Assembly (NCBI RefSeq): GCF_000002075.1
Contig: NW_004797280.1
Coordinates: forward strand, 1,628,701 to 1,691,073
Reading direction: 5' to 3'
From: Aplysia californica
Taxonomy: Eukaryota
DNA: 62,373 nucleotides
Both the position numbers and the translations under genes were made by a program. Under the pieces are notes generated by a model. That model had not been told where the DNA came from, did no database searches, and saw nothing but the letters and a program-made list of their open reading frames with translations. Of the stretch, positions 10,300 to 48,026 are shown piece after piece (the first letter of the stretch is position 1; each line of letters starts with the position of its first letter).

Positions 10300-10454
10300 T
10301 CATTGGATGTAGAACACCGTTTTTTTCAAAGAGGTGCTTTATGCGCCATCTATTTTCAAGTCACATGACCTTGGTTATACCGTCTGATTGGCGCTTTTTC
10401 CGACCAACCTTCTGTATTGTCGGAATCATAACAAGCTTGTCGTCTTCAGCCATC
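10300..10454 (+). promoter_or_regulatory. Probable CRTC proximal promoter / 5' UTR
   Basis: Inverted CCAAT boxes (ATTGG at 10302 and 10387), palindromic E-box GTCACATGAC at 10360-10369, locally CpG-richer sequence just before the ATG. Confidence 0.5.
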
Positions 10455-10565
10455 ATGGCGAACCCTCGGAAGTTTAGCGAGAAAATAGCCTTGCACACTC
10501 AAAAGCAGGCTGAGGAGACAGCTGCTTTTGAGGCTATTTTACAAGAAGTTAATTCTGCTACCAGG
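10455..10565 (+). CDS. CRTC: CRTC exon 1, TORC_N CREB-binding helix
   Basis: [37 protein letters not shown]; donor AGG|gtaatt; phase 0. Confidence 0.97.
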
Positions 10566-13500
10566 GTAATTTTCTGATGCTCATAATGGACTTGATCTAG
10601 GGATTCATCTGAGAACGAGACTTGTGTCTGTGTTTGCACAAAGTAGAGTGCGATGTGTGTGTTGTTTTGTACGCCCAATTGTTACACACTGCACACTTCG
10701 GTACCCCAACACGCAACACGGTCTTACCGCACGTCTGTCCTGAATTAAACTGAACATTACTGGCCCAACAACACACTATTATCAAAACGACAATGTAGTT
10801 AGGCTTTTGGTTATTGGCTTATTGAGTTTCGGAATATATTATCCGTTCAAGAAATTATGACCATGTCTGGGCTGGGTTCTAATTTTTGGCAAGCTATTGA
10901 CTGCTGTTCAAAATGTTGACCAGGTCTAGTGTCAGATTTTGTTATTGTTTGTCTAATGGCAAAGGTGGAACTGGATGTAGATCTAGTGTTTGATTTTCTG
11001 GGCACTGTTTTGATAGATTTCCTTGAAAGATTGGGCCTACTGGTGCGCAATGGGTTCATAATCCTAAGGCAATTTTAAAACTTGATTCTGTAATCTGATG
11101 GTTCTTTGCCGCAAAATTGCAGCACTGATCGCTCACACAGCTCACGGCCACGCATAAATTTGTTTTCGGACATGATATCGACTGTCCTGGAATCTAGTCC
11201 TAGTTGTAGCTCTAGCCCTAGCCAATTTCAGATCTATCTAGAATTGTAATGGTTTGGGCCATCTCTATTCTCACCCCAGGTGAGAATAGCACAGGCGAGT
11301 CTTTTGGCTATTCTCACCCTGTGTGCGTTCACCGCCTAGATCTAGGCCAACCAGTGTTGCGTTCATCCTGAACCACAGAATTCTACACTGTGATTACAGA
11401 ATTGTAGAATTCTGAGCGGGGAACAAACGTTCCATTACTACTGTTAGCCTAAAAGAAAAGTGTGCAATTTTGTCTGTGGGCAGTGGAAAGAGAGAGAGAG
11501 AGGAGTAGCGCAAGAACTTCCGGGCAACACAAAATGGCGACCCACGTAGTTCGGCTCGATTCGAAAAGTTAAATAGCCGTAGCATCTTGTAGACGACCAA
11601 ATTAATTTACTTTTGTGTTTTAACATCATTTTTTAACTTTGTTTTGGTCAATTTGATCGTCCACACCGATAGACAGTATTCAGAAAGAGACAGAGAGAGA
11701 AGAGGGGAGGAGTAGATCTTGCGAGAACTTCCGGGCAAAAGAAAATGGCGACCCGCGTATTTCGGCTCGATTCGAAAAGTGAAATAGCCATAGCACCTTT
11801 GTAGACGATCAAATTAGCTTTCTTTTGTGCTTTAAAGGTAATTTTCTTCTTTGCTTCTTTCGGTATTTTTTTACTTTCCCTCCCGTCTCACACTCAGCTA
11901 CCAGTTGTCTATTTTCTACTAAATATTGATGCGCTGAACACGAATATCAACTTCATTTCCGTCGCAAATTAATAGTTTTTGAAATATTTGATTGTTTTTA
12001 ACCGAGATAGACATGCTTTGGACCAATCGGGGGGTTCCAGGGGGGCCTGCCCCACTGGGGTAAAAGAAAATCTGGGGGGTTACAGGGGGGCATGCCCCCG
12101 TTTTTACACCCATAATTTGATATTTTACAGTTAAATTTGAAATTGTATTGAAAATAATTGATTTGCGACAGTTTTAGTGGCTTTATGTGTGATCTGCAGC
12201 AAACAGTACAGCAGTTTGACCCCTGAAACAGTGCATCTGTGTGCGGGAGTGAAAGTAAAAATTTACCCTTCTTTCTATTAATTTGATCATCCACATCGAT
12301 AGACAGTATTCCGAAATAAGGGAAAACAGGTCTTGTTTCACATCGGGTGAGAATAACCAACGGTGGCAAGTCTCACCCAGGGTGAGAGGTCGATCATATT
12401 TTTATTCCCACCCCGGGTGAGGATAGCCACTTCCAATGGTTTGCTAGATTAAGTAGGCCCTATTTTAGACTATTAGGCCTTTTGAATTCGCAAATGTGGG
12501 GTCATGCTCTAAGTCTTCTAAGAGTAGATTTGCCTCGTCTGATCCTGCTGTTCAATTACCGCGCCTGCCATAATTCTGTCAGGTAGTAAACAGTATCCAG
12601 ACTGCTAGTACACTACTTGGTCACGGACCCGTGGGAACAATGCTAGCTATGAGATGATACGCTTCTAAAGTCTAAAGGCATAGTATAGTAGGTTTAGTGA
12701 AAGATCATGACTTTGTTGGTCTTTATTGCTTTTCCAATGTATAAGAGTTAAGATGACCATTCCCCTCTTTTGTTTTTGAAACAATTTGTTCTATAATACA
12801 GTCAAACCTGTGTAAGATGGCCACCCATTGTCAAGGAGAAAAGTGGCCGTATAAGACAGGTGGCCTTCTTAGGCAGGACTGATCAAGATGAAGAAAACAA
12901 ACCATTCCCATCTGAGTCCCCAATCGAAAGTAGCCCCATTGTTGTTGTCTTTGTTGTTGTTGTTGCTTTGTATTTCGTTTGTAGTTTTCATTTTGTTGCT
13001 GCTTTTGCACAAACAAGGGTGACAATAAAACGAAATGTATCAGACTTAAGGAAGACTGAGTGCTGGGGTAAAACAAACACATGGGTCGCCACCACTCGGA
13101 GAACGAGGGGCGCTTCAGTAACAAGTTCATGTTGACGTCCTTTGTTACTTTGTTACAGACTGGGTAAACAGTGACCACTCATCTCACTTACGATTTGTGT
13201 ATGAGTTCTGGGCGGGGCTTATGGGTTATGAGGGATCACACACTTCCCTCACCAGCAGCTGAAAATTGGTAGCTATTGGTCAACAGTGGGAGGGGCGTAC
13301 GCAACATGATCGGTTGGAGGGGCTACCTAACAATAACGACAGGTGATTGAATTATTTATGACGGCTCGCCCACAACGCCAGGGGCCAAAGCACAATTTAT
13401 GACAAAACGTAATGGAGTCATTAAGGTGGCCGTCTAAGACAGGTGTTATTGTTTAGTGTGATAAGGGTTGTGTGTTAAATTATTGTGGCCGCGGCCGCGT

Positions 13501-28500: not shown

Positions 28501-31500
28501 GTATACCCAATTCAGGGATGTTCTTTGAGGAAAATTTGTCTGATCTGTGTACAGTGTGAATGGTGCTCTAAAATGGCGCATTTTCTTACACCAAAACTCG
28601 AATCATCTCTGGGGCTTCAGGATTCAATGGGATTTGTCATCTCTGAATAACCTTTTAGAAATAGCTGTGATGTGATGGATGTTATGTGTGCATATGACTT
28701 GTAGTACAGACTTGCAGCCTGCCTAAGGGTATATCTACTACTAATATTATGTACAGTATTATTTTTACCTCTTCAAGGTTAGTTTTGTCTCGTAATTTGA
28801 CGTAGTTTAGTTGTGTGTTAAATTACTCAATGTTGTGTAAACTGAAAATATGTCCATTTTTTTGTTCTCTAAATGATTGTTGTGAGAGCTTTCTATATGA
28901 TAAATCAATATCAGTGTTAGAAAACAGATTGTTTTTACTATAAATTGAACATTATCAAGTATACTCTTAATATTTTTTCAACGCTGTTGTTTTCTATGCA
29001 CAGATTTTGCCTTGCTTAATGCTTACAGTTTTGTTTTAACCGTTTTAAAATGTTATTTTCTTTAATTTTCCCAACTCTTTCTTTGTGTTCAGATTTTATT
29101 TGACCACAGTTTGGTTTACCCTTTTTTTTCCTTCTTGCAATTTTGATTGATTTCCTTTGCCAGTTATGGGCTCCCCAAGATGAACCGCTATCTGTATAGT
29201 GGCGTTTCCTTGTCTCGGTGAGTGTCTTTCCCCTTTCCCCTCCCCTGATTTCCTCTCTTACCCTCAAACCTTTGTGTTTGACCCTTTGCACTCACTTGCC
29301 AAACTGTTTCTTAAGGTGTGGTTGTGGGCGCTATTATGCATTTTAGCTATTTCCAGGCTTAATGGTCATTCTCCCTCAAGGTGGGAGAGGAAGCATGGGG
29401 GTTGGGTTCTTGTTTGTGGGTGGATTGCAGCGTGGTTATGTGACTCATTGTGACCGGGGCAGCGTGATTAGAGTTGTTTGATTAGTGCCAGTTCCAAATG
29501 GCATGTGATCGTGTACTTCTACGTTGATTTTATGTCGTGTATGCTCTTGCTTCATGTGCTCTTTGTGTTTGAACTATGTTGTCTTGTCCTTGAAAGGGTA
29601 CCAATGCTTTTGTTGTTTACCTTGTAGACTTTTGTACTGTGTTACGCCGTGCTTCATGGTCTTATGGGTCAGATGTTTTTGGCTCATCGAGTGTTTATAT
29701 TGTCTTGTTGTCAGTTTGAGCTTTATTCGACTGTTTCAAGACTTGTAACAGTTTAAGTAAATGAACAATGTGACTCTTGGAACATGGAGGGAGGGAATTT
29801 GTAGAGTGAGACTTGTCAGAACTTCATGTTTCTTAAGTTTTTGCATAGGCAGTTGAGATGTTTCCTCAAGTTTTCTTATAGTAAAGGGGACTTAGTTTTG
29901 AAGGTAACTAACTTCAGAACATTCTGCCTTTTAGTAATCAGGATAGAAACTGCTCAAAAGTCAACCCTCACCCATCCAAAGCTTGTCTGATAAATGGATG
30001 GCGACCAGGTACCCATTTCTGTGTACTTGTGACTTTTGATTTTTCCATCCTACTATTAACCTACTCTAAGACAATTCCATTCCAATCATTTCCAGAATTT
30101 TTATTAATTAGAAAAATTATTTTATCTAAAGTGCAGGAACCCAAAATGATTTTTCGACTAATAGTTTCCAAATCATAATTTCGGTGCTTGAGTAGATGTG
30201 TTGGGAAACTTTCTAGGGAGGGGTGGAGCATAGAGAAATGAAGATCTGATGGTCCTCCGGAATCATTTCATTACTGTGATGGAGATGGGAGGAATCCATA
30301 GATTTATTCTAAGAAATACAAATGGGCATCTTTTTGTCACTCGTCAACTTTCATTGCAGAGGACACACATAGGATTGATACAATGTCGTGTGAAAAGTAT
30401 CCCTGTTTGGTATTGTTATTGATTTCAATGAGGAGTTTGGACGTAGAATCAAGTTCATGTACTGGCAATACTGGCAACATAATTGTGAAGTATCTATGCT
30501 GTGGTGATGGTCTTCGCTTCCCAGCATTGCTTTTTTTGTTACTCTTTAATTGTGAATTTTGTATTTGATCTGTAAAGTTGCAGTGAACTTATTATACTTG
30601 TCAGTCATGCCTGTCCATGACTGAAGTATTGTCTAAGTGAAGTTACTTTAAAAATGTTTAGTGACAACTTTTCTGATGTGCATTTCCTTTCTGCGCCTTT
30701 TTTTTTTTAAGTCTGCAATTATATTGCAGAAACACTCTGTCTTTTCCGTAATGAATGGTCTTTGCGTGTCAAGTGCCCTATGTTTCACTTTGCATAGGGT
30801 TAATTTTTGTAGCCATGCTACTCTCCCATTGCTTTTTCTTGTTCTTTCATGTAACTGATGCATATAAGCTTCACAGGTCCCTGAACCTATTTGGTCACTG
30901 AACACATTTTAAAAAAACCAACTATTGTGTGTTCAGTTGACACCAGATTTCTACTTAATTATTAAGGACTAGCAATGACTGGTGGAGGTTAGGATTGTCA
31001 TGTTGTTTTGGCATGACAGGGTTGGTATCGGAGTTTGTTGAACTTCATTGATCTTCTAATCGTTTTAAGGAAAGGGCCTTTGCTGCACCCTGGGGGTATA
31101 TTTTGAGGATGAGTACACTGCATTGAAAAAACATTTCAGACTTTTAAAGAGAAGTATGAGTTTAAAATCAGAGTATTTAGTGGAAATAATGTTATTCTGA
31201 ATTTGTCTAATGGCTGCGTAATCTTGTTTATAAGCATTATCTTGATAGAAAACTGAAAGAGCATTTTGTAAAATATGTATGTCGATTTTCTCACTCGGTT
31301 TAAATGAGTGTGGCTCTAAGAAAACCAAATAGAAGGTGCAGATGGGATTTGTGAGATTCCTTTAAAAGTAGAAAGGGATTCCATCTCTATTTGAAAGTAG
31401 GTTTTATGAAAGATGGAAAAATAGCCCTCTTCTTAGATTTTGATTTTTAAGGATTTTGTTTAAATGTTGTTCTATTATTTTTTAAAAACCCCTTGACTGC

Positions 31501-34500
31501 TAACCATAAGTCCACCGTGTGTGCTAAGAAAATTTCCACAGTGGCTGTGTATGACATGGTCTGCTTTTTTAATGGCAATAGCTCGCTTACTATAAGCACT
31601 AGATACAGCAAAGTATATGTCAAATAAAAGAGAAATTAACGTGCAATCCACTGGTGTTACTCATTTTTAGGTATAAGTATTCTGGAGAAGAATCTGGCAG
31701 GTGAATGTGAGATTTAAAAAAATTCCATCTCCGTATTCGAGATCTCAGTCGGGTCTCGGATATTAGATTTATGACAAAAACCTCCTTTAGATGAATTGAA
31801 ATGTGCATAGTCATTGTCAGTATCTCGATAAATTTCTGCAATAACCTGATCCATAGACCTAGTCAACTTTTGCGAAGCCATCGTGGCGAATGTAGACTGC
31901 ACGCCAAAACTTCAGAGAGACAGACTGACTTAGTTATTTAAGCACAACACACAACACACAACACACCATGTCTCTTTGTTTCAGCTACTACATTCGAATC
32001 TCTGGACTAATAGCCAAAAAATAGGCATGATCACATCGTCAAGTGGAGAGAATACAGGGATGTAACTCTTGTTACTCAAAACTGTGTGGAAGTGAAGATG
32101 TGCATAAAACAAAACAGGGGGTTTTCAGGCGTACCAGGCGTACCATGTATGCCTACAGTGCACACGGGACTGAATTGTTACGGCGTACCAGGTACGCCCA
32201 CAGAGCAGGCAAGGGGTTAAAGAGATTATTTCGGTGACATACGGTGGCCAACATTCTAAAATCTAAAAAATTTTTACTCATTACTTTAGAGACTTATTTT
32301 CACATACACCCCCTACCAATGTAAAGGAAATTTATTGCTTTTCCAGTGAAATCTAGTGGGCATGGATATTTTAGCAGCAGCAAAGGACAACAACTGTGCA
32401 ACGTTTGTTTCACTCGTCATAAAAAATTTTGAAAGCTATTTTCTCAAAGCTTATCCTTTGGACCCCTTCCCTTTAAAGTGCTATAACTTTTTACAAAATG
32501 CTTTAGTTGCAGGGAAATGGATGCCGAAAGGCTACAGTAAGATGAACTCTCTGAAATGTGGAAAAACGGTCTGTTTTGAAACCGTTCACCTTTCAACAGG
32601 TTTTTAAAAATCATGTTCCATTGGTAATGAAGTTCATTTTGGGTGTTGAGTATCATGTTTTAAACTCTGGCGTTTTGTTTGGTGACAGAGACAACCTCTG
32701 AGAGCTTGAGACGTAAAAGATGCCTTTCATTGTGCTTCAGCGTATCCTATGTTATTTTATGGAGCGTCAGGTTTGGTGGGAAGCTTCTAACCTACTTGTT
32801 TGTGTGTAGTGTTGAAATTGTTTTCTTTATTGTTCCAGGGTGCACTCTGACCCCTCCCTGCACATGAATGCAATGGGCGGAAATACAGCAAATAAAAATT
32901 ATACGCATCCCCCCGTGACACCACCGTCCCATCGCCGTAGTAAGTACCACTGTGATGTGTTATATTTATGTGTTGGGAAAGAACATATCGTCGCTGTTGC
33001 AAGCAATTCTCTTTAGTTCAAAATTTGAGAATTTTTAGATTTTTACATACACCTTTCCAAAGCTTATCAAAGATGCGACTTTCAATGTCGCATACGTTAA
33101 CTCGGGTAATGATTTCCTTTCTTTCAGGATTTGGTTTGTATCATCTGACTTTTTGTGTATCAGTGACGTTTACTTGATTCCTGTTTTCCTCCTTGTGCTC
33201 CACGGGAATTAATTACCTATATTTTACTGAGGGTCTGACTTATGGAGATTTGTAATAGCCGGAATCTGAGGCTGTCTCAAAGCGAGGCAATGTGCTTGGC
33301 TTTGTGATGGTTCCTGATGCTGTCTGGATAATATTTGGATTAGTTTTTTGTCGTATGTTTCAATTTCAAAGGGGGCATTCAAAGGGCTGTTGGCATGCTC
33401 TTCAGCCAGTCGTGACTTTGAACCATAAGCAGTGATTCATTTGTGTTTGTCCTTACAGTTGTAGAGATGGTTGGAGAGAATGCAGGGGACAGCCTCCAGT
33501 TAAATTTCTGGGATTCTAAGAAAATGGGACCATCGAGGCCAAAGTCTTGTGAGGTTCCCAATATCAAGTAAGTGACAATAAGTTATACAATGTGTGAAAA
33601 ATATATTGATGTGCAACACAACTGTTTAACTCATTTTCGCCCATTAACGATACATCAGCACAGGCTCTATACTCATACTTTATTTAGTTCATAAATGCTT
33701 GATCCATAATTTTAAGTTTTGATATAAACAAATTTCAAAAGTAGAAACTTCCTGCAACAAAATATAGTGTCTATAACTACGTAAGTGGGTGGAAAGTTGA
33801 AATTGTTGAAATATTTTGTGTGGTGTGTTTGTGAAACCAAAAAATGAAAGATGATCACTCCTATTTCTAGTTCAAGCTATTTTTTCTGGGCCTGGTAGTA
33901 AACGACCCTATGGGTATATAACTTGTAAAACAGACTAGGGAATTTTTATTTAGTCAGCTTGAGGACAGAGATGATATTGTCTTAGAATCCTTAGCTTTAG
34001 ATTCTAATTTGGGTGATTATTGAATCGAGAATGCGAAGCGCGAAAGACATGATTCAACAATGACAGCAAAGAGGATAGTTGGAGATAGGGAAGTGAGTGA
34101 ATATGTTTGGAAATGAAAGGGAAAGAAAGCCAAGAGAAGTGAAAATCAAGAGGATAATGATCTAGATCTAGGTCTAAATCTAAATCTAGACTTGGACAAG
34201 CAAGTGCAACTTGGGCAAATTCTGATTCATTGCAACTTTTGGTATTGTCACAGTGATGTTACAAAATTGATAATAAAATCTGCTAGAATTGCACAATGTC
34301 ATACCTTTTTGCATGATTATGCAGGGAATTGAATGTAACATTCATTTTATAAGCGTAGGAATCTTTTTTTGAAATACAAATTTTATTATTGATATTTAAA
34401 GTCGAAAATTTAGTCTGTCTTTTTATTAGCTCCCATGTCCTTCCCAACATACATACTTATCATTCACGATCGGATGCACAGAGAAAATTGGTGAAAGCTG

Positions 34501-37500
34501 GTATAAAAATGGGCAGGGAATGAGTTAATAAATGTGGGGTGATGAGAGGGGGGTGTTTGTCTTTGTCATCAAATGTTATTCTTAATTCATGACGGACCAA
34601 TTTTTATTTAGTTTCCTAAAAGGTAGATCTCATAATGTACTTAAAAGATTTGACAATATGTGCACAAACCGTACTAGGAACAGATTGAGCTCCTTGTAAT
34701 TCCTTGCATTGTTTGGACTTTCATGGGTCTTGAGCTGTGTTCAAAGTCCACTAAAATGTTCACAGACTATTTTCTTCTTTAAATTGGTCTCAATTTTTTG
34801 GGGGGTCCTGAGGAAGTTGAGTACCTCTGTGTATGACTTATTTAAGTGTACCTGAACGATCAGGATACATTTTTACCAAGGTACGTCGTCAGCTCGCATG
34901 TTTAGTTAAATATGATTGAAATCTTTGTTTTCAAAAGTTGTTTACTTACAAGTATGTCTACTCACATGTTGGCTGTGTTGTTTTCCAGCATTTACCCCAG
35001 CCAGGAGCAGGAGGGCAGCAGCTCACAAGGGGGTGGTGCCATCATCCCGATGACGGCCAACAATACAGGCTCCCTGCCTGACCTGTCTGTGCTGCAGTTT
35101 CCCTCCCCACTGGTCACACCCCTGGACCAGGAGGACCCCTACAATACGGCCAATGCTGTGGCTGGCGTGGCCAATCAGGGCAACAGCCCTGTGAGTCTAA
35201 GCCCCACCAGTCCGCGACATATGCCAGGCATGGCCCACTCGAGCCCGCAGAGCCCTAATCAGCGCCGCCGCCAGCCAGGAGGCATGGCTCTTCCCAGCCC
35301 GCTGGTGTTGAATCAGATGGGAGGCCCACCCTCGCCCGTGAGTACACCCTTATATTGCCATCTTCCTTTTGATTCTCATTCTTGTTGTTTTTATTGTTGT
35401 CCTGCTTGAATACGTGGAAATTGTTCAGGGATTTATATTGCCAGTTTACAAGACATGGGAAGTTTCTTGTTTTATAATGCTTTTGCCAATAGCATTGGTA
35501 TTTTTTGTAATGTGCAGGGTATCAATTCAATTTAAAAGGGGCCATTCAGATTATTGTAAGCGCGATTTATTTTGACTGATTGTTGAAGAAGAGTAAACTG
35601 TAAATGTTGCAATGTCAAGCATTCTGAATAGGTTTTGTTGCTTATATAGGGCAATCTGATTTGAGAAGTGAGGAGTGAAGGGCTGTTTATGTGCAGTAGG
35701 TTTTGTTTTTATTCACATTTGTTCGAGTATTGCTTTTTTTTTTTTCATTCAAGTAGTGATCACTACACCATTTTTTCCAGTTGCAATTTTTGTGTGATTT
35801 AGTATTACGTAGCTTAATGTTAAGTTACCGAAACATTTCCTTTCACAATTATGAGTTCGTACATGTACACAAATATTCCTTTAGATATTGAAATTTGATG
35901 AAACAACTATTGTGACATATATTTTCATACTTCTAAGTAAATTTAATCATTACTATATTGCAAACAGAATGTTGATAATAATTTTTGTTTCAACATGGGA
36001 GAGTTTTGAGGATCTTATTAGATTTGAAACTAAAGTGCTGTCTAAATTTGTCACAGCAGTTAGATGTGTTAGAAAAGTTTTATCTTATGTACCTAATTAG
36101 CTTTATGCTCTGCCTCATATTTTTGAAGAAATTTTCTTGAGAGATATTGAACAGCAAAACAAGAATTTAAAACCAACCTGGATGGAGAATCACCATCTGT
36201 TATTTGTTTCAGTTGTTGCTTTACTGCTTTGTAGTGTAGATATAGATTTAAATGTTGCTACCCCCCCCCCCCCCTCCTTATTCATGATATGCATTTTATG
36301 ATTTTGGGGGGGGGGGGATTTGTCTCCCAGGAAATGTATATATTTTTTTTTTCGCCGAGAGATTGTTTTATGGTCAAAGTTGCGAAATCTGTGGATGTTG
36401 AAAGTTGTTCAGTGACCTGTTGTATGCACCACACATTGTTCTTTTTGATGTCCTATTGTCCTTGGCTGTAGAGAGTGTGTTAAGTAGTTACGCTTAAGTG
36501 GACCAGCTTGTTTAGGCCATCACAGATTTTTACCCTTGGCCAGACTGCAAAATGTTCCTTTCTGTGATATGAAGATCAGTTGGATTAGCTGTATCTAACT
36601 GTTATGCTTTAAATAAAGATGTGGAACTTCTACTTTTAGTAGTAATACGATAATAGACATCATCGTCTTCAGTGTTGAATGGGCAGTTACATGTAGATCA
36701 GTTTGGTATGTTTGGTTTCAGTTAATTTTTTTTTAACCATTGATTGTGCACATCATTTTAAAAATATTTTTTTAAGAAGGCTTTTGGCTCATTTGTTTAC
36801 TTGCAAGCATCAACAGATTTTTAGTTTTTTAGTAGAGGTTTTAAGGCACTCGCAACTACATACGATCATATGAGTGCCAGAAGATTAGAGGTGTTACAAG
36901 AGAGTAATAAACATAAAGAAGTAGGGGAGATAAGGAAGATAGATGTTTGATGGGAAAGAAGAAGCAAACCACACCAGAACACCCGCCAACCACCCACTTC
37001 AACAGGTTTTCTGTAACAAATAATCACTGCATTAAAACAGGAAATGAAAAATCTCTTCTGCAGCAAAATTATTTTTTGTTTACCCTCTTACAACTGCAGT
37101 GACATAAAATAAATTAATATTGAGCCATTTTATTAACTTTGACTGACTCTTTAACTAACGTTGCTTCTGAAAATGTGTAGGATATATGTGTGATTCTGAG
37201 AAAACCTTTGAGAAAGTGCAAAAAGCTGTTTTGTGATATCATAAAAAATAGGTAGGACTGATTTTTTAAATGAAAATGAGAAAGATGAAAACCTTTCTAA
37301 ATTTGAATTTGAAAGAATTTTGCTGAAATTAACATTTAGTTGAAGACTTATGAGGGCTGCCTATTTCTACAGATTTTTCCAGTAGTTACTGATTTTGGAC
37401 CTGTTCTCCCGCCATACCGATAAAGGTATCAAAACTTCTGGATTTGCGATGGGCACTGAAAGTAAAAGAAAAATAAAATGGCTCGTTCTGTAGTGCTTCC

Positions 37501-40500
37501 AATTTTCCTTATTTACGGAAATCTGTACATTCTGAATGTTACTCACCTGACACATCATCGTATCAACTTCATCAGTTGAAATAAAAGAGAGAGAGAGAAT
37601 CAAAGGATCCGTACTTGCTTCCGTAACTTCTCAGATATTTATGGTTACCCTCGGCAATGAGTTAATAGAAACCTGACAGGGTGTGCATTAGGTACACTCT
37701 ACCGTTGTCCGGCTAGGCCTGTGCATCTGTTGCGAGTTGTTGGCAATACATTTTCACATGCAAATCGGCTAAAATCTGACTAGATACACAGCTAATCTTT
37801 TCTCTGCATTTCATTCACTTATTCTTTTTGTCTATCTTCGGGATTTTGCTGCGGCTGGAAAATCTGTGCCTTGATTTTTTTTTTAATGGTTTGGGAATGT
37901 AGAATGAAAATTAAAATCAGAAAGAAACTTTTTCAAATCTGTCTAGATTTTGAGAAATTATCAGTATGGGGATTCTACAGCAGCAGGATAAGGCCACGGT
38001 GCAAGAAATTCATGCTAAAATATAAAAAACAAAGGAAATATGGAAGTGGTGCTCTGAGGTGATATTTGACAATCGAACTTGTAAATGGGGGAAAATTAGA
38101 ATACAGGCTCCGTGATTGTGTTGTCAAGACTTATATATGCCTGCTGTCAGTGGTGTGCTGACAAATTGAATAGTGACAATGGAAAAAGGACATTTTTCTA
38201 CCCTCGAAAAGTAGTAAATTAAAATTTCTTCTGGGGCTTTTCTCCCAGAACCCTCACTGGACCTTGCTGGGGGGCCTGTGATTGAGATTGAGAGAAAAAA
38301 AATCAATCTTTTTTTAGGTGGACAAAAACTGCTTAACGGGATACCAGAGGATAAGATCTGGAAACCAAGTTCTATGATTAGAGCGCTGTGCGTGCAGCAG
38401 GGTGCCTCTTTGTATGATGTCTTGTGTGTAGGCTATACGCAATGATAGCTACCCCCCAGGGTGGTACTACTGACTGAAGTGTCTTAAGGTCATTCCCAAA
38501 GGGGGGACATTAAACATGTTCTTATGCACAGTAGAATTGTAATTGTTAATGGGCTGATTCATCAATGTCATGCTCTGAACTGCAACTGCCTGAACTGCAA
38601 CAGGGAACTGCAGCTTTTTCTTTCCTAATCCTTACAAACGCCTTTTTCATCTACTTCTTTTGTATGTTTGTCACTCTATTTACGGGGTGCCTTAATAGTC
38701 GAAGCAGACTTTGTGTTGTTGAAGCCAGAGAGGTGAGCAGAGTAAGCCTGATTCCCTGTAAGGGCTTCTCTGTTGACATCCACCCCTTGGCGCTCATATG
38801 ACCTTATGCAGTTGCGAGCGCCGTAAAACCTCTACTAACACCCCCCGGGGCAGTGCCACTGACTGTAGTCTTTAGGCCATTCCCAAAGGGGGGGACATTT
38901 CTCGTTCAAGCATAGTAGAATTATAAATGGGCTGACTCATGTCACGCTCATAACTGTGCCTGATCTACAACAGGGAACTGCTGCTTTTTCTTTCCTGACC
39001 CTTACTATTGTTGTTTTCCTCTACTTCTTTTGTATGTTTGTCACTCTCTTGTGACCTGCTATTTTGGGGTGCCTTGATAGTCGAAGCAGACCATGTGCTG
39101 TTGAAGCTAGAGAGGGGAGCAGTCTAACTTAGTCTAAGTCTAATTCCCTGTAAAGACTTCTCTGTTGACACCCACCCCTTGGCGCTCATATGACCTTATG
39201 CAGTTGTGAGCGCCGTAAAACCCTCTAATATAAAAAAAAACAACCCTACTAAAACAAACAAAAACTCAATGATAGCCTTTTCACTATGAAAACACCAGTT
39301 TTTAAAATATTTTGCATTTTTTAAATCCAATAATTAATGTACGATGCAGTGACTGCCAGATTTTCCAGCATCACAACGTCCCACATTCTCATAGTCCTTC
39401 AAACTCAGTACTTGCTATCTTCCATTGTCACTTTTTAAAAATCGTTTGTGATATATGCATACAATAATATTAAATGAAAGGATATTTTTACTGCTTCTAA
39501 GGGGAAAATTCTATGTACATGATCGCATTATGTGAAGAAAAAAAAATGGATCATTTCGTTTGCTCTTTATTCAGTCCTGTCATGGAAATAAAATAATTTT
39601 CTTTAAAAAGTTTCTGATGTTCAAGAAAAATGTTTTATTTAGAGTATGCTAGCAAGTCTCTTGAAAATGTATGTGTGACATTGTGATGAAGTCAGGCGCT
39701 CGTTGTGAAATCGAGGAAACTGGCATTTTCCCATCCAGAGGACAATTTTTAAAGAATTTTTTGTTTTGGGTTCAACACTTTTTATGTCCATTTAGAAATG
39801 CATTTCTGCGTTTATTTTACTGAACAATGTTGATCAAAGGCACAAAAAAATGTAAATTTGCAGTTTCTAAAGTCACAGCAGCTTTAAAAGTTACGAAATT
39901 TCGGCAGCCATTTTCTTGCTAATTTTATGTCTGAAATCAGGTGATCCCCCACCTCCTTTAATTGCAAGTAACTCGACTTCTTTTCAAGACAATGGGTAAT
40001 TTTTCATCAAAAGCAAAAGAACTGAACAAGCTTTAAGATTATACCAATAATGCGACACGTACCTGCGATAGATTTTCTCAGAATCACATTTTTTAAAAAG
40101 TCTAGTACATTCCTTAAAAAATGCTCGTGTCTTATACGGGGTGCCCACTACGGCTGGATCGGGCAGTTCCTCCGACTCGATCGCCTGAAACTGAAAACAA
40201 ACACGTTTGTTTTTGAGTCGGTCGATCAACCCGATCGGCCGATCCCATCCGTAGGTGTTGGAAGTGATAGCTTGTGAATTGTTTTGTATAAAGTGAAAGA
40301 AGGTATCACATACATGCTATTGATTTGATTTTTTTTTTTTTCATGTGAAAACTACTTGATCGAAACAGGTTTAAAGTTATCAGCAGTGGCTTTGGAAGAG
40401 GGAAGCATGTGCTTTCTAGTTGACTTTTAATGAACTCATTTCTGTTAAATCCACACTTTTTCCTTAGATTTAGAATTTTTTTTTGTCATTTCTTTCTTTT

Positions 40501-43500
40501 TTTTTTTTCTATTTGGTTGGTTGATTTTCATCCTGATTCATTTTTGACTGTACTTTTGTTTATAGTGTTAGTGTGAGTCTTGCTGTTGTGCTTTTGTCAG
40601 CGTGTCTGTTTGTTTGGTTTTTAGGCTGGAATGGCAGATATGGACCCGTGCATGCGACAGCAGTACATGTTGTGTTTACAACAGCAGCAACAGCTACAGC
40701 AACAACAGCAGCAGCAGCAGCAAATGAGGCACCGGGGCTCCCCCCACAGCCAACCCTACCCGACTCCTGTCTCTCCCTTATACTCGCCCACGCATCGGTC
40801 GCTAAACCACCAACGGCAAGCCACTAAGCCTTCATTGCACAATCACTCGCACCACATAGGCTCTCCGACTGGTTCCCCAACACACAGCACCCCCTTGCCC
40901 CCCAATCAGCAGCCACAGCTTCACCAGGCTCAGTTCTCACCCCCCATCCAGCCACAGCAACAACAACAACAACAACAACACACAAACCCCCAACAGCATC
41001 AGCATCAGCAACAACAACAACAACAACAACACCAGCGTCAGCAATCTCCCCTGTCGCCCCCGGTGCCTCAAGTGCACATCACCAACTGTGATGACCCGAG
41101 TACGCAGGTTGGTACCTTGTGTTACATGTTACATTTCCCCCGACCAGCTTACATAGAACATTCGCGTATGAGCTTATAGTCATGCACTGCATCGATATTT
41201 TCCTTCATGTGTCACATATTGTACGATGTATTGTCTTGTATTTATTAACTCACCAGCAGTGTATATCTTATGGTTTGTTAAACCAGTTTGCAGCCCTGTC
41301 CGCTGTATATACTTTTTAAAATATGTTTTCATTTGTTCATTTTGTAGTTTTCAGTCATTTTGGGATTTCAGAAGATGACTGTGTCAACCTGCTATTTTGA
41401 GAGAAAAGTTAAGATTAATTATGATTATATTGAGGTCATGAGAAGGGAGCTGGTTCAAATAGTCCTAGGGAAATGATGTTTTATTCATATTTGCCTTTAC
41501 AAGTACGTATCTTATAGACATGAGATTTGGGTTTAAATACTGTATTTGAAAGGGATATGTATAAGTAGATGAGTAATAATAAAATTGTCTTTCGCGTTCA
41601 GGTTTTTCTTTGTCCACCTTTCAAGGAAGTCACTTTTTATAGAACTTTCTTAGGTTTTTAAAATGTGGTTGAGAATGTGTGTAACACTGGTGCATGTTAA
41701 AATAATGGGAATAATATTAATATAATCTTTTAGCTTTACTATGTTGATCCATTTATATGAATTTGTTGAATCTTCTGAAGACAATGTTAACACAGTGTCT
41801 TGTGTTATATAATGTTAGTAGGCTGTACACCTGGTGTCCATGCTCTTGTCTGTGCCAGTGTTGAGTATGAAGTCCTTGTGTGCTTGACATTGTAATCCCA
41901 CCAAGCATGATGTGACGCGGCAGGCTTCAGTGTAGCACGGCTTCTCCTGATGTGTGTGTACTGTACCCGCTGCTTGGCCATCCTTTGGCAGTGGGCACCT
42001 GACTAGTCGGTAGTCACCTTGTCGTCCCTTTACCTGAATTCTGTTGACTAATTCTTCAGTTACTGCCAACTGTTCTAGGTGGTCCCTCATACTGTATTAT
42101 AGTGGTGCAGCTCCTCTGGGTATATTGGTTGGTCACTGGTTNNNNNNNNNNNNNNNNNNNNNNNNNNNNNNNNNNNNNNNNNNNNNNNNNNNNNNNNNNN
42201 NNNNNNNNNNNNNNNNNNNNNNNNNNNNNNNNNNNNNNNNNCATAACAGTATATAATGTCCCCTCAACATGATATCAAAATGCACTAAGAAGTACCAGAA
42301 CTCTATCTAGGTCAAGATGAAGTGGGTGGCTTGTGGATATTTTGGTATTTAGTTATCTTTCATCATTGTTGCTATTGTCCTTATCTGTTCCAGGCAAAAT
42401 GTGGCCGTTGTCACGCTGACTCGCTGTAAACCACGGCATAACAGTTCAACAGGGTGTCATTATGTAAATGTTGTGTTTGTAAAAGGGCAAATGGCAAAAG
42501 AGCTAGTGAAGAATGTTTTTTTTTCTCTATCTGTATTTCACAGGCGTCCATGACGCAGTACCGCAACAATGCGGTCTCTGAAACAAACTGCCAGTCTCCC
42601 ACCTCCCCCCATTCAGCCCCCTCTTACAGTCCTTCCCAGTCCCCTGGGCTGAACCCCACCACTCAAGCTGTCAACTCAACCTTCAGCGACTCATACTACA
42701 TTCAGCAGCAGCAGCAGCAGACCAACGCTCTGCAACATCAGTTCGAGCAGTTCAACATGGTCAGCACCTTTCTTTGTTTTTGGCTATTTTTTTTTCTTTC
42801 TCGGGCCCTTATTTTTGGTTTAATGGGGGTCCACCTTACTAGTAACAATGGGATATCATTCAGTTTTGCAGGCTGTTTACAACATCAGTTTTACTAATGG
42901 TACGCTCTGTGGTACTGTGTTCTCTCAAAGTATTGTGTCAATACCTTGTAGAATTCTATAAAATTCTGATAGTGTTTAGTTTTGTAGACTAAACTCTGAG
43001 GGATTCCAAGGTATTTCTTTGATAGTAAACTTTATGGGGAATGTTATTTTACTTCACAGAGTGAGATGTACTTGTATCATCACTTGGTCTCTTTAAGACT
43101 CTCAAAGTCATGGTCTTATCTTTGAGTGCACAGCCTTGTTTATATACTTCTATACTTGTGTGTTTATATAAGCTCAAGCCATCAAAAGATTGTACGTGCA
43201 AAGTAGTAGCATGTTCACTTTGTTGAAGGTCATCATAAGACAGTTTCTAGTGCTCTTTATCTTCCCCTCCTCCCTCCCCCCCTCCCTCTCTCTTCTGTCT
43301 GTCATCCTCCACTACCGTCTTTTTGTCTCTCTCTTTCTCTTACTGTCTCTCTCTCTCCCTCCATCCTTCCTTCTCCCCTCCCCTTTTTATCTTCCTCCCC
43401 TCATCTCGTTCAATTGCTCTCCCTTTGCTGTCTACATCTCTCTATGCCCTGTCCTATCATCTGCTTTATCTCCTTCCACTCTGCACTCTTACCTTCCCCT

Positions 43501-46500
43501 CTTTTCTTTTCCCCTCTCTCTGTCATGCCCTCTGTCTTTGTGTGTCTGTCTGTCTCTCTGTCTGTTTGTCTGCTTGGCCGTCTTTCTTTCTCTCTGTCTC
43601 TTTTCCTCTCTGTTTCTGTCACACACACACACGCACACACACTCACACACGCACACACACACACACACACGCACACACACACGCACCTGGCAGTCAAAAC
43701 AATTGTAACCTATAGATTAGATGTGAAAACTGTATGTTTGTCTTTCAATTGAAAATACTTCTCTTGTTCTGTGAGGCTATGATTTGAATTGCTTCTTTTC
43801 ACTCTTTGCAAAGGTTTTTTTTCATCTTGCTTAAAATATCAACATTAGCATGAAAACACTTTCTGCTTGTTACGTTTCTACTTTTCGAGGTTTTTAGTAA
43901 TTCAGTAACTGTATGCACCCTTATGATACGAAATATTTTGACCCAATGTTAAATTAAAAAACAAGCCTCATGAAGTGTCTTGTAAGCATCAGTTAGCAAG
44001 CTACTAGAACTATAGGTTTAATGTTGAACCCCTTTCATCTTGTAGAGAGACTGAAGAGGCTTTCTGAGTTAGCAGTCATATTTATCTCTGGCTTGCCACC
44101 AAGCACATGCACAACTTAGGACCACCAGTTATTGATGAAACTTTCTGCAGTAGGAAACTATTTTTCTCTCTCTTGATGTATTTCTGTATCTGTTTACAAT
44201 AAAGTAAGTTCAATGCCTACTTTTTGACAAATCAGCCTAAAATTTATTTGTATTTATAAAAGACTTGTACACTATTTCTCTGAAAACTTATGGGATTTTG
44301 TATTGTAAAAATTATGGAGAGAAGAAAGAGAAATACAGACGTTCTTGTAAAAAAATTGGAATTGAATGTTGAATGACTCTTGACCGTTTTCTTGTTGACC
44401 TTTCTTCAGAATCCTCCTGGGGACCCAACCACCATGGGCTCCACAGTCATGACCAGCAACGGCCTGGGTTTAGTCAGTAGCAGTAGCGCTAACAACATCA
44501 ACAGTATGGCCTTCTCCCAACAGCCGGGATTAGCATTACAGTACTCTCAGGTGAGTGGACGATGGGTGGTCTGTGCCTCATCAAGGACTAATACTTTACC
44601 AGTAACAACAGCTTTTGCAGTCACATGTTCATGGGCTCGATTTGCTCACCCTTACTCAATAGCATCTGTGATGATATAAAGAAGGATAATAGATGATTGG
44701 CTTTCTGTTAAGCTATTTTGCTTAGGATTTCTGGCAGTGAAATGGGGAAAATGATAAAATGTGTCACGCCGCAGTGGAATCGGTAGCTCGTTGGGGTTTG
44801 TGGAGTTATTGGTATCATCATAAAGCTTGTTCATTTGTGTGCTTTCAATGAAAGAAATATACATCTATCTTGAATAGAAGTTGAGATGTTTGTCATAGAA
44901 CGAGATGGGGATCACCTGGTTTCAGGGGTTCACCAAAGTTTGGTGACTTCCTTAGCTTGACAGTCCATGGAAAGTGAAAATTCACTCTTTTTTTAAAAAG
45001 TGCCTTAAATCAACGGTTTTCTGTAAAATCTACACAGAAATGTGCTTTTAAATGGACATTAGAGGTGTCGAATCAAAAAACAAAAATTCAATAAAAATTG
45101 CCAAACCGGCGTGAAAATGCTAGTTTCTTTGATTTAATTAATTTAACCTTTTCGCTGCCGCTCTCATAGAATTTACAGGCTTGAACCATGTAACGCTGAT
45201 CCTATGGCCCGTAGAATTTACGGGACTGTGACAGTGGTTGTTTAGATACCAATTATAAGGGAAGTTACTGCTAAAGTCTTGTACATATTATTGGGGTGCC
45301 TTCCCTTTATGTTTACCTCCATCCCCCCCCCCCCCATCCATTTGAAAGCGTCAGATTCAGATTTTAGCTGGAAGAGAAGATTAGATCTAGATGTAACACA
45401 TCTACCACACAAAAATGATTTACTGGCAGTAAACACAGATGGGCTTATATGTATTAAAATGGATTGTACGAGTGTTGTATAAGGTAGGGAAAGCCTCTTG
45501 TCACTTCTTTTTTACCTGTAAACACTCACACAACATGTATTCTTCTTCTTTTTTTTGGTCTCAGTTTATCATTACTCGAATGTGTGTTGTTCATGTTGTT
45601 TTGTGGTGTTGTTTTTGGCATCATGTTACTAACTCCAACTTTTCTCCATCTATCTCTATATCAATAGAAATGTGGTTCAACGTAGAAGGTACATGCAGAA
45701 ATTCATTAGGAAATATTCATAAATAAAAAAGTTATGAGAGGTAGAGTAGGGTCACCCCTGAGAAGCCCTGGTTCATGGTATTTCTCCCAGCACAGGGGTC
45801 TATTTACCTGCGGCATTGAAGGGGTTAATGACCCATGATTTCACCATATTTGCTCACAAATGAGTTCAGAAAGGTATTTCAACAAACCCGAGGTGCTCAG
45901 CGAAATTTGTATGGATGCAGACTGTGATGCAGAGGCAGATGACTGGAACAATGACCTTGATTATTTGGGAGTCTTCAGATGATGGGAGAGGAAAGGATCG
46001 AGAATAAATCTTGAAACAATTATCTCTGATTGAGAAGCAATTTACTCTTATAAGTAAATCAAGATCTAATCTCTCATGTCTATTTGGATCTGAGTCTGGA
46101 CAAAAGCATACCATGATATAACTGATTAGATCTTCCCTTTAGTGACTGAAACCAGAATATTTTTTTCAATGGAAATGTGTTCATATAAAGGGATACAGTT
46201 TAAACAGAATGTTGAAGTTTCATGTCTATAACGTAACAAGGGTCTGAGTTATTCATATTTGAGTGACTTACCTCTGATACAGTCAGAAAAAGGACGGCAG
46301 CTCCTGTTTTTGGGAACTGAAAGTCAAATGTGAGGCTGGTGCTATAAGTATTGAGATCATCTGTCAAGAGGCATAAGGCCATACATAATTTTTTTAGCAC
46401 AAATGAATTTTTGAAATAAATACCGGAGCAGCTCATTTAAATATCATTCAATTCTCTGACCTGCAGGCAGCCATGCTGGGACTGACTAGCTCGGATGACC

Positions 46501-48026
46501 TCTTCCAACCACATTTCCTGGGGCCTATTGATGTGATGGCTAGTGGTCAATCGGGCAGTCACCCATCAGTGTCCAGCAGCCGGCCTATGGCCCAGAGCAA
46601 CTCTGTTTCTTCACCCACTTCTGGCAGCAAGATTCCTGACATTGTTCTCACTGGTAAGGCAGAGGAAGATGTATTGCTTACAAGATATATCTTTCCTGAA
46701 GAGTTTATTTTTTAAGTCAAAGGATAAATGGGGTTGGGGGAGGGGTTGGTCTCCATATTGCATAAAAATTGATTGTAGCAGTCAGCTCGTATGATATTTT
46801 GTACTGCATGTTTCTGTGAGAAAAAGTATTTTTCTTCTTGCTCAATATTTTTGTTGTTGGCGGGAATGATGTGGTGATAATGAATAGAAAAGGTTGTTTA
46901 GGTTTTATAAGGCTTATATGGGGGCTTTTTGTTGTTTCTGTTCATTTGGAAAGTTGTTTTGGTAAGTTTGGGAGTTTTTTTTGTGAATTGATGAGTTCCC
47001 TTGTCAAATCTGTCGATCTTCACTTAAAAGTTTACTTATTAGCTACTTTTAGAAAATGTTTACTCCCGTGATACTAAATGTTACCCCGAGCAGCTGAGAA
47101 TGTTTCTGAGTTACCTTCTAGGGTCCCCTGGGGTAATAATTGTAAAGTATGTAGAGCATACTGTAGAGTGAGGGTGTGCACTGCACAAATGTGACTATTA
47201 TTATTGTTGTTACAAATTAATATGGATTTAATATTTTGATACTCTATAGTTGCAAAGGTTAAGAAGAATGAGGTTATTTCTCTTGGGTTTTTGTGTCTGG
47301 CACACAGTGTGAATACCGGTACTCTTGGCACACAGTGTGAATACCGGTACTCTGCACTGCAGGTGTAAATGATTAAATGAAAAGGATTTTTAAACCATTG
47401 ACATGATTTAACGAAAGTATTATTTTGTTTTATTTGTTTCTTTCAACAAAAGTTTTTCAATAGTTGTATGTTATAGGACTGTTGCTTTCAGGATATAGGG
47501 AAGGGCTTTTGGAAAAAAATATTGTCATGTTTTACATAGTTGAGTTATTAGACTTTTGTTCTCTGTCCTCTATACAGCCTAAAATGTCTGCATTTTGTAA
47601 CTTTAAATGTTTAGGTATGTGCAGTTGAAATAATGCAGATCTCTAAATTATTAACTGGATTTCATGCTCCTTGACCTTACCTGCAATTTTCATGGAGTAC
47701 GTTTGAGATGGAACGCTAAGAATGTGATGGTGTAGTGTGTTTTTTTTGGGGGGGTGAGGTTGTTGTATTTTGAGACTGAATCTTTCCATCTTTTTGTGTC
47801 TGCAGGTGCTGACGACTTGTGTCGGTTACCTCTAGATTTTGCCAAAGATTTGGGTAATGCCATCACGGGCATGACCGATGGATTTGACACTGACTTTCTC
47901 ACCAATGACGAAGCTTTCAAGGCTGGATTGGATCCGTTAGATTTGGAAGAAATTCAGATGTTAACAGATGCTAGTTTAGTTGCCGACCCTGCCACAGAAG
48001 ACACTTTCAAGTTGGACAGATTGTAA
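10455..48026 (+). CDS. CRTC: CREB-regulated transcription coactivator (CRTC/TORC), whole-gene span; 12 core exons, 751 aa
   Basis: join(10455-10565,19156-19299,19683-19811,22747-22811,32839-32939,33459-33567,34989-35337,40625-41107,42544-42759,44410-44550,46467-46653,47806-48026) = 2256 nt, open frame, all GT-AG. Family motifs: [81 protein letters not shown]. Confidence 0.96.
11262..12432. mobile_element. Non-autonomous inverted-repeat element (MITE-like) in CRTC intron 1
   Basis: Palindromic ctattctcacccc-a-ggtgagaatag-type motifs cluster at both ends; internal ~110-nt direct duplication. Confidence 0.55.
12799..13622. mobile_element. Tc1/mariner (pogo/Tigger-like) MITE
   Basis: TA|cagtcaaacctg ... 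caggttggacta|TA; repeated subterminal caggtggccgt motifs. Confidence 0.75.
14945..15152 (+). mobile_element. tRNA-derived SINE with CORE/V-like centre
   Basis: A-box-like tggccaagtgatt, B-box-like ggtttgagc, central gtgtccttgggaaag, tail ...gttgacaggggcattaaacc. Confidence 0.65.
15270..15431 (+). mobile_element. ~185-nt retroposon copy whose tail is interrupted by a DNA transposon
   Basis: Aligns to 2376-2560; the tail continues as ctaaagctaagaaac after 17419. Confidence 0.85.
15432..17417. mobile_element. ~2-kb non-autonomous Tc1/mariner-type DNA transposon
   Basis: 24-bp TIRs cagtagtctccgcctaaacgcacg / cgtgcgtttaggcgcagactactg (1 mismatch), TA duplication, subterminal gcgtgcgttt repeats; no recognisable transposase ORF. 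Confidence 0.88.
17444..18110. mobile_element. Possible MITE
   Basis: ccctaccaca (~17510) is inverted against tgtggtaggg (~18100); exact ends unclear. Confidence 0.35.
19156..19299 (+). CDS. CRTC: CRTC exon 2 (Q12 tract and [10 protein letters not shown])
   Basis: ctgacag|EPPRYQK(Q)12[29 protein letters not shown]|gtaagg. Confidence 0.95.
19683..19811 (+). CDS. CRTC: CRTC exon 3
   Basis: cccag|[43 protein letters not shown]|gtactg; resembles the CRTC1 LVDR...PHRR...DK segment. Confidence 0.9.
20950..22325. mobile_element. Possible Kolobok-like non-autonomous element
   Basis: Imperfect inverted ends taaaagaaaccacactcccct / aggggtggtcagtggtcccttta; CpG-rich interior unlike the flanking intron. 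Confidence 0.4.
22747..22811 (+). CDS. CRTC: CRTC exon 4
   Basis: tcacag|[23 protein letters not shown]|gtgagt; ends in phase 2. Confidence 0.95.
25534..25826. mobile_element. piggyBac-like MITE remnant
   Basis: TTAA|ccct ... aggg|TTAA. Confidence 0.5.
27150..27330. mobile_element. Fragment related to the 12799 MITE
   Basis: ggagaaaagtgg...caggtggccattagagcaggttcgactgta resembles both ends of 12799-13622. Confidence 0.55.
29164..29217 (+). CDS. CRTC: Candidate CRTC cassette exon 4a (54 nt, phase 2-2)
   Basis: Long pyrimidine tract, tttgccag acceptor, consensus CG|gtgagt donor, length divisible by 3 and open in the required frame: (S)[17 protein letters not shown](R). Confidence 0.65.
29357..29380 (+). 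CDS. CRTC: Candidate CRTC microexon 4b (24 nt, phase 2-2)
   Basis: tatttccag acceptor, weaker AG|gtggga donor; open in frame: (R)LNGHSPS(R). Confidence 0.4.
31489..32216. mobile_element. piggyBac-like MITE
   Basis: ccccttgactgct / agcaggcaagggg|TTAA inverted ends; left TTAA degenerate. Confidence 0.6.
32839..32939 (+). CDS. CRTC: CRTC exon 5 with the main regulatory serine (CRTC1 S151 / CRTC2 S171 equivalent)
   Basis: ttccag|[35 protein letters not shown]|gtaagt; phase 2 in and phase 1 out, fitting both neighbours. Confidence 0.9.
33459..33567 (+). CDS. CRTC: CRTC exon 6
   Basis: cttacag|(I)[37 protein letters not shown]|gtaagt. Confidence 0.95.
33630..34524. mobile_element. TTAA-flanked MITE (piggyBac-like)
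   Basis: TTAA|ctcattttcgccc ... gggcagggaatgag|TTAA. Confidence 0.55.
34989..35337 (+). CDS. CRTC: CRTC exon 7 (NNTGSLPDL site)
   Basis: ttttccag|(N)IYPSQEQ...[26 protein letters not shown]...GGPPSP|gtgagt. Confidence 0.95.
36822..36998 (-). mobile_element. ~185-nt retroposon copy, antisense
   Basis: Reverse complement aligns to 2376-2560; flanking repeat tcaacag(a/g)tttt. Confidence 0.85.
38450..39266 (+). mobile_element. Head-to-tail pair of ~390-430-nt retroposons with the shared hairpin tail
   Basis: Units at ~38451-38839 and ~38840-39240 align along their length; the pair is flanked by direct repeat caatgatagc (38440, 39267). Confidence 0.85.
40625..41107 (+). CDS. CRTC: CRTC exon 8, Q/H/P/S-rich low-complexity region
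   Basis: tttttag|[13 protein letters not shown]...[14 protein letters not shown]|gttggt; 161 codons, GC-rich coding-like composition, phase 0-0. Confidence 0.88.
42142..42241. other. Assembly gap (100 N) in CRTC intron 8
   Basis: Run of n; true size unknown. Confidence 0.99.
42544..42759 (+). CDS. CRTC: CRTC exon 9
   Basis: ttcacag|ASMTQYR...QSPTSP...[13 protein letters not shown]|gtcagc. Confidence 0.93.
43250..43686. repeat. Polypyrimidine (CT/TCTG-rich) tract followed by (CA)n
   Basis: Read directly; explains the cluster of spurious ORFs here. Confidence 0.92.
44410..44550 (+). CDS. CRTC: CRTC exon 10
   Basis: ttcttcag|[14 protein letters not shown]...LALQYSQ|gtgagt. Confidence 0.88.
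45147..45824. mobile_element. piggyBac-like MITE
   Basis: TTAA|ccttttcgctgccgc ... gcggcattgaagggg|TTAA. Confidence 0.6.
46467..46653 (+). CDS. CRTC: CRTC exon 11
   Basis: ctgcag|AAMLGLT...KIPDIVLT-G|gtaagg. The YSQ|AAMLGLT junction resembles CRTC1 YSQAAMMGLT. Confidence 0.92.
47806..48026 (+). CDS. CRTC: CRTC exon 12, TORC_C transactivation domain
   Basis: tctgcag|(G)[15 protein letters not shown]...[32 protein letters not shown] followed by TAA TAG. Confidence 0.97.

Follow-up and report, generated by a model that had tools for sequence, protein, structure and literature searches.

An optional cassette exon beside the gatekeeper phosphosite of the CRTC gene of Aplysia californica

We analysed a window of 62,373 nucleotides from the sea hare Aplysia californica (NCBI RefSeq assembly GCF_000002075.1, contig NW_004797280.1, positions 1,628,701 to 1,691,073 of the forward strand), which holds on its + strand a single complete gene for CRTC (TORC), the partner of CREB that is gated by cyclic AMP (cAMP) and calcium and acts in metabolism and long-term memory. 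A small cassette exon of this gene is spliced in or left out just upstream of the regulatory serine of site II, its insert is conserved at the same place in most of the mollusc CRTC proteins examined, and its inclusion changes the residues in front of the serine from W-R-R to L-S-R. We read it as a conserved optional cassette that toggles the gatekeeper site between a CRTC1-type W-R-R and a CRTC2/3-type L-S-R form and would thereby set the responsiveness of the CREB co-activator; the probability that we give this reading is about 0.7. In a signalling protein that has been studied in depth, alternative splicing would here edit a motif for kinases and 14-3-3, and a splice switch beside the gatekeeper serine would let neurons or other tissues set the ease with which CRTC escapes from 14-3-3. 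Memory has classically been studied in sea hares and pond snails, and as the isoforms lie one small exon apart, the idea is directly testable. Vertebrate CRTC1 and CRTC2/3 have long been noted to differ in how they respond to cAMP, and the switch may also point to where this difference came from.

The cassette exon, its junctions and its conservation

The exons and signals around the cassette are as follows (coordinates of the window, strand, feature).

22747..22811, +, exon 4, 65 nt; ends on the AG of an Arg codon, donor GTGAGT
29114..29163, +, cassette acceptor region, a pyrimidine-rich tract ending in TTGCCAG
29164..29217, +, 54-nt optional cassette exon; phase 2 on both sides, adds 18 residues
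29218..29317, +, cassette donor GTGAGT followed by a C/T-rich stretch, 73% pyrimidine
32839..32939, +, exon 5, 101 nt; its first base finishes the Arg codon at -3
33459..33567, +, exon 6; positive control for splicing in the contig run X7 (see below)

A preliminary description of this sequence had placed a 54-nt phase-2/2 exon with strong splice signals at 29164-29217, inside an intron that splits the Arg codon at -3 of the serine, and both statements were borne out. Exon 4 ends in TGG CGT AG/gtgagt at 22811 and exon 5 starts as cag/G GTG CAC TCT at 32839; because the one ends in AG and the other opens with G, the intron falls between the second and third bases of the -3 Arg codon. Skipping, which joins exon 4 to exon 5, reads W-R-R-V-H-S. 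The cassette is free of stops in phase 2, and its final CG together with the G of exon 5 restores an Arg codon; inclusion therefore keeps the frame, adds 18 residues and reads L-S-R-V-H-S. The Leu at -5 and the Ser at -4 come from the cassette, as do two of the three bases of the -3 codon. The serine, the Arg at -3, Pro +2, Leu +4 and everything downstream are common to both forms. The preliminary description spoke of a rewritten phosphosite, which proved too strong a word: the residues at -5 and -4 do change, but the serine, the -3 Arg and the downstream residues stay as they are, and the Trp at -5 of the skipped form is itself hydrophobic.

The 10,027-nt intron contains 419 candidates of 27-201 nt that are bounded by AG..GT, keep the frame and have no stop. 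The cassette is the sole candidate that passes all strong-signal thresholds (at least 15 pyrimidines among the 20 upstream nucleotides, a YAG acceptor and a GTRAGT donor), with 15/20 pyrimidines of its own. In 200 Markov-1 random introns of matching size and composition the mean number of such strong candidates was 0.145 and 12% of the introns held at least one, so the splice signals alone are only suggestive; the reality of the exon is settled by the RNA contigs and the conservation described below. Over 100 nt, the flanks of the cassette are 72% pyrimidine upstream and 73% downstream, the latter value being reached by just 0.9% of the 100-nt windows of the intron, and the C/T-rich stretch at 29218-29317 is a possible splicing-control region. 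Two GCATG elements lie 176 and 284 nt downstream of the cassette and two TGC elements within 30 nt of the acceptor. These counts and the pyrimidine-rich flanks are too close to chance for any claim about a splicing factor. An open frame of 91 residues rich in Lys, Arg and Glu overlaps the cassette on the - strand (29019-29291); it seems to reflect the complementary strand of the pyrimidine tracts and showed no evidence of being a gene.

Out of 24 runs, four were compared with the region 28000-33600 of the window: X21-X23, which are raw poly(A) RNA, and X7, a run of contigs with a small word share. In X7, record 3 (113 nt, depth 18.9) contains the end of exon 4, as 28 letters identical to 22782-22809, then the cassette, and then a GT..AG joint 29216>32838 (cut +1) into exon 5. 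A second X7 contig carries the same 28 exon 4 letters directly before exon 5, which is the skip junction, and record 7 (967 nt, depth 19.4) runs from exon 5 through exon 6 into exon 7. Both ends of exon 5 are backed by these contigs, through the joint just given and 32939>33459. X7 is only tentatively an RNA run, but its four exon-exon joints show spliced transcripts. Inclusion and skipping junctions are both present in this one run, and the three junctions proposed beforehand (22811>29164, 29217>32839 and 22811>32839) were all found there. The genome as a whole gave one match to the domain TORC_N and one to TORC_C, both inside the window, and CRTC is therefore a single gene; the earlier proposal that one gene makes both architectures held.

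Conservation was examined in a mollusc set of 41 CRTC proteins, 39 of them named as such by their source and two grouped by clustering with a cuttlefish fragment; one search for relatives gave 106 matches, of which the 26 with at least 400 residues were examined. An insert between the invariant W-R and R-x-x-S was found in 32/41 proteins, and the other nine are without it. The tally by group, extended to the deuterostomes that carry an insert, is as follows.

Heterobranchs, insert in 8/10
Other gastropods, insert in 8/10
Cephalopods, insert in 7/10
Bivalves, insert in 9/11
Glandiceps (hemichordate) isoforms, insert in 1/6
Amphioxus proteins, insert in 4/4
Vertebrate CRTC2/3-type rows, insert in 79/80 (76 LNR, 3 LSR)

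All 32 mollusc inserts place Leu at -5 (22 LSR, 8 LPR and 2 LAR). In the MAFFT alignment A1 all inserts fall in the same columns, and the W and R are invariant in 28/28 sequences. Heterobranch inserts have 18 residues and match the cassette of the window at 13-14 of the 18 positions (counted by eye); in most of the other molluscs the insert is 12 residues long and keeps the same core. An internal acceptor that would give a 12-residue version in Aplysia was ruled out, as the reading runs into a stop. The genome contains the cassette and its flanks only once; together with the conservation across molluscs, this rules out a transposon-derived exon.

Both forms are catalogued in Physella acuta (X2 vs X5/X6), Pomacea canaliculata (X2 vs X4), Octopus sinensis (X3 vs X1/X2/X4/X5) and Mya arenaria, and one further 90% protein cluster contains both. 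Skip forms are catalogued for Physella (X2), Lymnaea, Pomacea, Octopus sinensis, Mya, Potamilus and Gigantopelta. Searches by single exons and by the proteins of relatives returned no CRTC isoforms of Aplysia itself among the database matches.

Outside the molluscs and deuterostomes no insert was seen: it was absent from all 22 arthropod and priapulid proteins, where W-R-R is the sole form, from six further insect rows, from the one annelid protein and from the CRTC of Nematostella, which reads W-R-R. At the same site none of 119 vertebrate CRTC1 rows carries an insert (among the best 120 of 2,641 matches, so that rarer forms may have been missed). The vertebrate CRTC2/3 tally leaves out P0189 and the CRTC1-like P0193. 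Its sole exception is isoform X2 of CRTC3 in the skate Rhinoraja, which lacks exactly the insert and so hints at a separate exon in vertebrates.

Phosphosite motif and alternative explanations

The context typical of site II in the CRTC family, P-P-D-T-S-W-R ... R-x-x-S-D, is present in the Aplysia gene. By alignment A1 the Ser codon of exon 5 (32846-32848) is the counterpart of S171 of CRTC2, followed by Pro +2 and Leu +4. As gatekeeper, site II controls 14-3-3 binding; it is a substrate of SIKs and MARKs (PMC5325614). The AMPK-family kinases prefer LXBS/TXSXXXL and the 14-3-3 binding motif is RXXS/TXP (PMC5325614); the motif LXRXXSXXXL is named in PMC6890249. Set against the kinase consensus, both forms have R at -3 and L at +4; the included form has L at -5, and the skipped form has W at -5 and a second R at -4. 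Both forms keep the residues of the 14-3-3 motif in R-V-H-S-D-P, a predicted binding site.

In mouse, CRTC1 carries W146RR and CRTC3 L157NR; exchange of the two lowered the activity of CRTC3 by more than 50% and raised that of CRTC1 modestly, and the authors stated that the two Arg enhance 14-3-3 affinity and are the likely cause of the weak cAMP induction of CRTC1 (PMC5325614). The motif and paralogue differences that the preliminary description had given agree with this source and with the counts of 79/80 and 0/119 above. The Aplysia cassette alters the same three positions as the mouse swap, from W-R-R to L-S-R. By analogy with the mouse mutagenesis, the skipped form with its two Arg would bind 14-3-3 more tightly and respond weakly to cAMP; the included form, a better match to the AMPK-family consensus, would be clamped less firmly and released more easily. 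The ratio of inclusion would then let cells set the responsiveness of the CREB co-activator.

Several observations weigh against this reading. The isoforms catalogued for the relatives are automatic predictions, and the Aplysia junctions rest on one contig run whose RNA nature is inferred; the raw runs X21-X23 gave 3, 3 and 5 reads, none of them exonic, and are hence uninformative on ratio or tissue. The X7 contig with the cassette is close in depth (18.9) to that of the downstream exons (19.4), a hint that inclusion dominates and skipping is minor in that sample, although contig depth is a poor measure of expression level. On the protein side, the Trp at -5 is hydrophobic too, so that kinase recognition may differ little between the forms, and the mouse swap used the mammalian LNR in a T-N context while the mollusc form is LSR in a V-H context. 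The core of the insert is moreover conserved well past its last two residues. The tuning of -5 and -4 may therefore not be its sole or main role, and a further role such as docking is suggested.

Two other explanations draw on these points, and we consider each of them unlikely. The cassette could be constitutive in practice, the exon 4-exon 5 joint being rare splicing noise of no regulatory use. The near-equal depths in X7 and the insert in 8/10 heterobranch database proteins would fit, but a skip-junction contig is present in the same run, skip forms are catalogued in two heterobranchs and five other mollusc genera, and the skipped product is in frame and remakes the W-R-R seen in arthropods and priapulids and in Nematostella; the depth comparison itself carries the weakness already mentioned. 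Alternatively, and with similarly low odds, the exon is optional and chiefly serves to contribute a separate short motif for docking or modification, the change at -5 and -4 being a side effect. A candidate core (aromatic-Arg/Pro-x-Leu-Asn-Gly, with its tyrosines) is kept from gastropods to bivalves and cephalopods, and selection on -5 and -4 alone would not account for its conservation. This core matched no known motif and differs in the deuterostome inserts, however, and the single feature common to the 32 mollusc and 79 vertebrate CRTC2/3 inserts is the Leu at -5 followed by a small residue. The frequency of equally strong candidates in random introns might suggest that the cassette is an accidental open frame to which a long intron happens to lend splice-like signals; this is refuted by the spliced X7 contigs and the homologous inserts of other molluscs, and we regard it as extremely improbable.

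The toggle of the gatekeeper site is the reading that we prefer. Our literature search, made in full texts, found no paper on an optional exon at CRTC site II or on a tie between such an exon and CRTC1 versus CRTC2/3. The isoforms themselves are already visible in the gene catalogues of related species.

The CRTC gene and its other features

Protein and domain searches were made with the exons one at a time and were supplemented by searches started from database proteins. The nearest database proteins belong to heterobranch gastropods. Besides the exons listed above, the following parts of the gene were placed.

10455..48026, +, CRTC coding span, some 12 coding exons besides the cassette (full-length P0002 of Biomphalaria and P0003 of Lymnaea aligned by tblastn)
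10455..10565, +, coding part of exon 1, CREB-binding TORC_N (Pfam PF12884, E 7.9e-20)
34990..35340, +, exon 7, ends approximate, TORC_M (Pfam PF12885, E 1.7e-11)
47806..48026, +, last coding exon with the stop codon, TORC_C (Pfam PF12886, E 2.4e-16)

The three domain matches reached 71.7 bits on the exon 1 translation (cut-off 25), 44.8 bits for TORC_M on exon 7 (cut-off 27) and 60.3 bits for TORC_C on the last exon (cut-off 26). A second 14-3-3 site (site III, of the SLPDL type) is visible in the translation of exon 7.

Other differences from the relatives were seen along the gene. A Gln-rich exon at 40625-41125 (+) has counterparts in Lymnaea P0003 and Elysia marginata P0005 and none in Biomphalaria isoform X4 (P0002), and is probably a second optional exon, judged from these protein comparisons. 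The start of the penultimate coding exon (46446-46580, +) has a counterpart in Biomphalaria P0002 and none in Lymnaea P0003; the difference may be a further splice variant or one of annotation. Upstream of the ATG, 13 open codons (10416-10454, +) match the N-terminal extension of Biomphalaria P0002, with Ile in the window where the start Met of P0002 stands, and this segment could be a conserved leader or contain a non-AUG start. Exon 2 (19153-19302, +) encodes a run of 12 Gln, against two in the Biomphalaria and Lymnaea proteins. Outside the CRTC gene, an open frame of 173 residues at 61482-62000 (+) resembles what we take to be the tail of a retroelement protein.

Origin and comparison with known systems

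The mollusc and deuterostome inserts, compared by eye, have in common only the Leu with a small residue at the end and an aromatic-Arg pair, and their cores differ. That one ancient exon lies behind both is plausible, and repeated independent gains of an insert in the same conserved intron are possible as well. The earlier suggestion that the paralogue difference descends from an ancestral splice choice gains support from the insert being optional in four mollusc species and one hemichordate. Splice forms of an ancestral gene may be partitioned among its duplicates, each keeping one form, and the distribution of the insert suggests that this may apply to CRTC. A fuller scenario, which we put forward tentatively and at slightly less than even odds, is that the cassette is an ancient bilaterian one. 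The protostome-deuterostome ancestor would have toggled between a tightly clamped W-R-R and a cAMP-responsive L-x-R form, as molluscs and hemichordates would still do; the ecdysozoans would have lost the exon; and after the genome duplications of the vertebrates CRTC1 would have been frozen in the skipped form and CRTC2/3 almost always in the included one. If this is true, the known functional split between CRTC1 and CRTC2/3 is older than the paralogues.

Mammalian CRTC1 has long and short isoforms that likewise differ by an insert that is optional, keeps the frame and precedes the same serine. That insert has 16 residues, lies about 60 residues further upstream in a different exon, and leaves W-R-R intact in all rows. 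Both S167A and S151A have been used for the same SIK site (PMC3640950; PMC5325614). Among 91 vertebrate CRTC1 rows counted (P0264-P0355), 46 have the gatekeeper serine at 167 and 38 have it at 151, and the S151/S167 numbering in papers is due to the 16-residue insert. That this numbering might reflect the same cassette was therefore ruled out, since the mammalian insert is elsewhere and W-R-R is unchanged.

In the other molluscs, the predicted CRTC1-like isoforms have the same optional insert at the same spot, known there from automatic annotation. The closest known counterpart is the difference between vertebrate CRTC1 and CRTC2/CRTC3 at site II (S151/S171/S162), where the difference affects the same three positions and takes the same form (PMC5325614). 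The CRTC2/3 insert occupies the place of the mollusc cassette, between the same W-R and R-T-N-S; it is longer (21-24 residues) and similar only near its end. Vertebrates have the two forms in separate paralogous genes, whereas in Aplysia one gene makes both by splicing.

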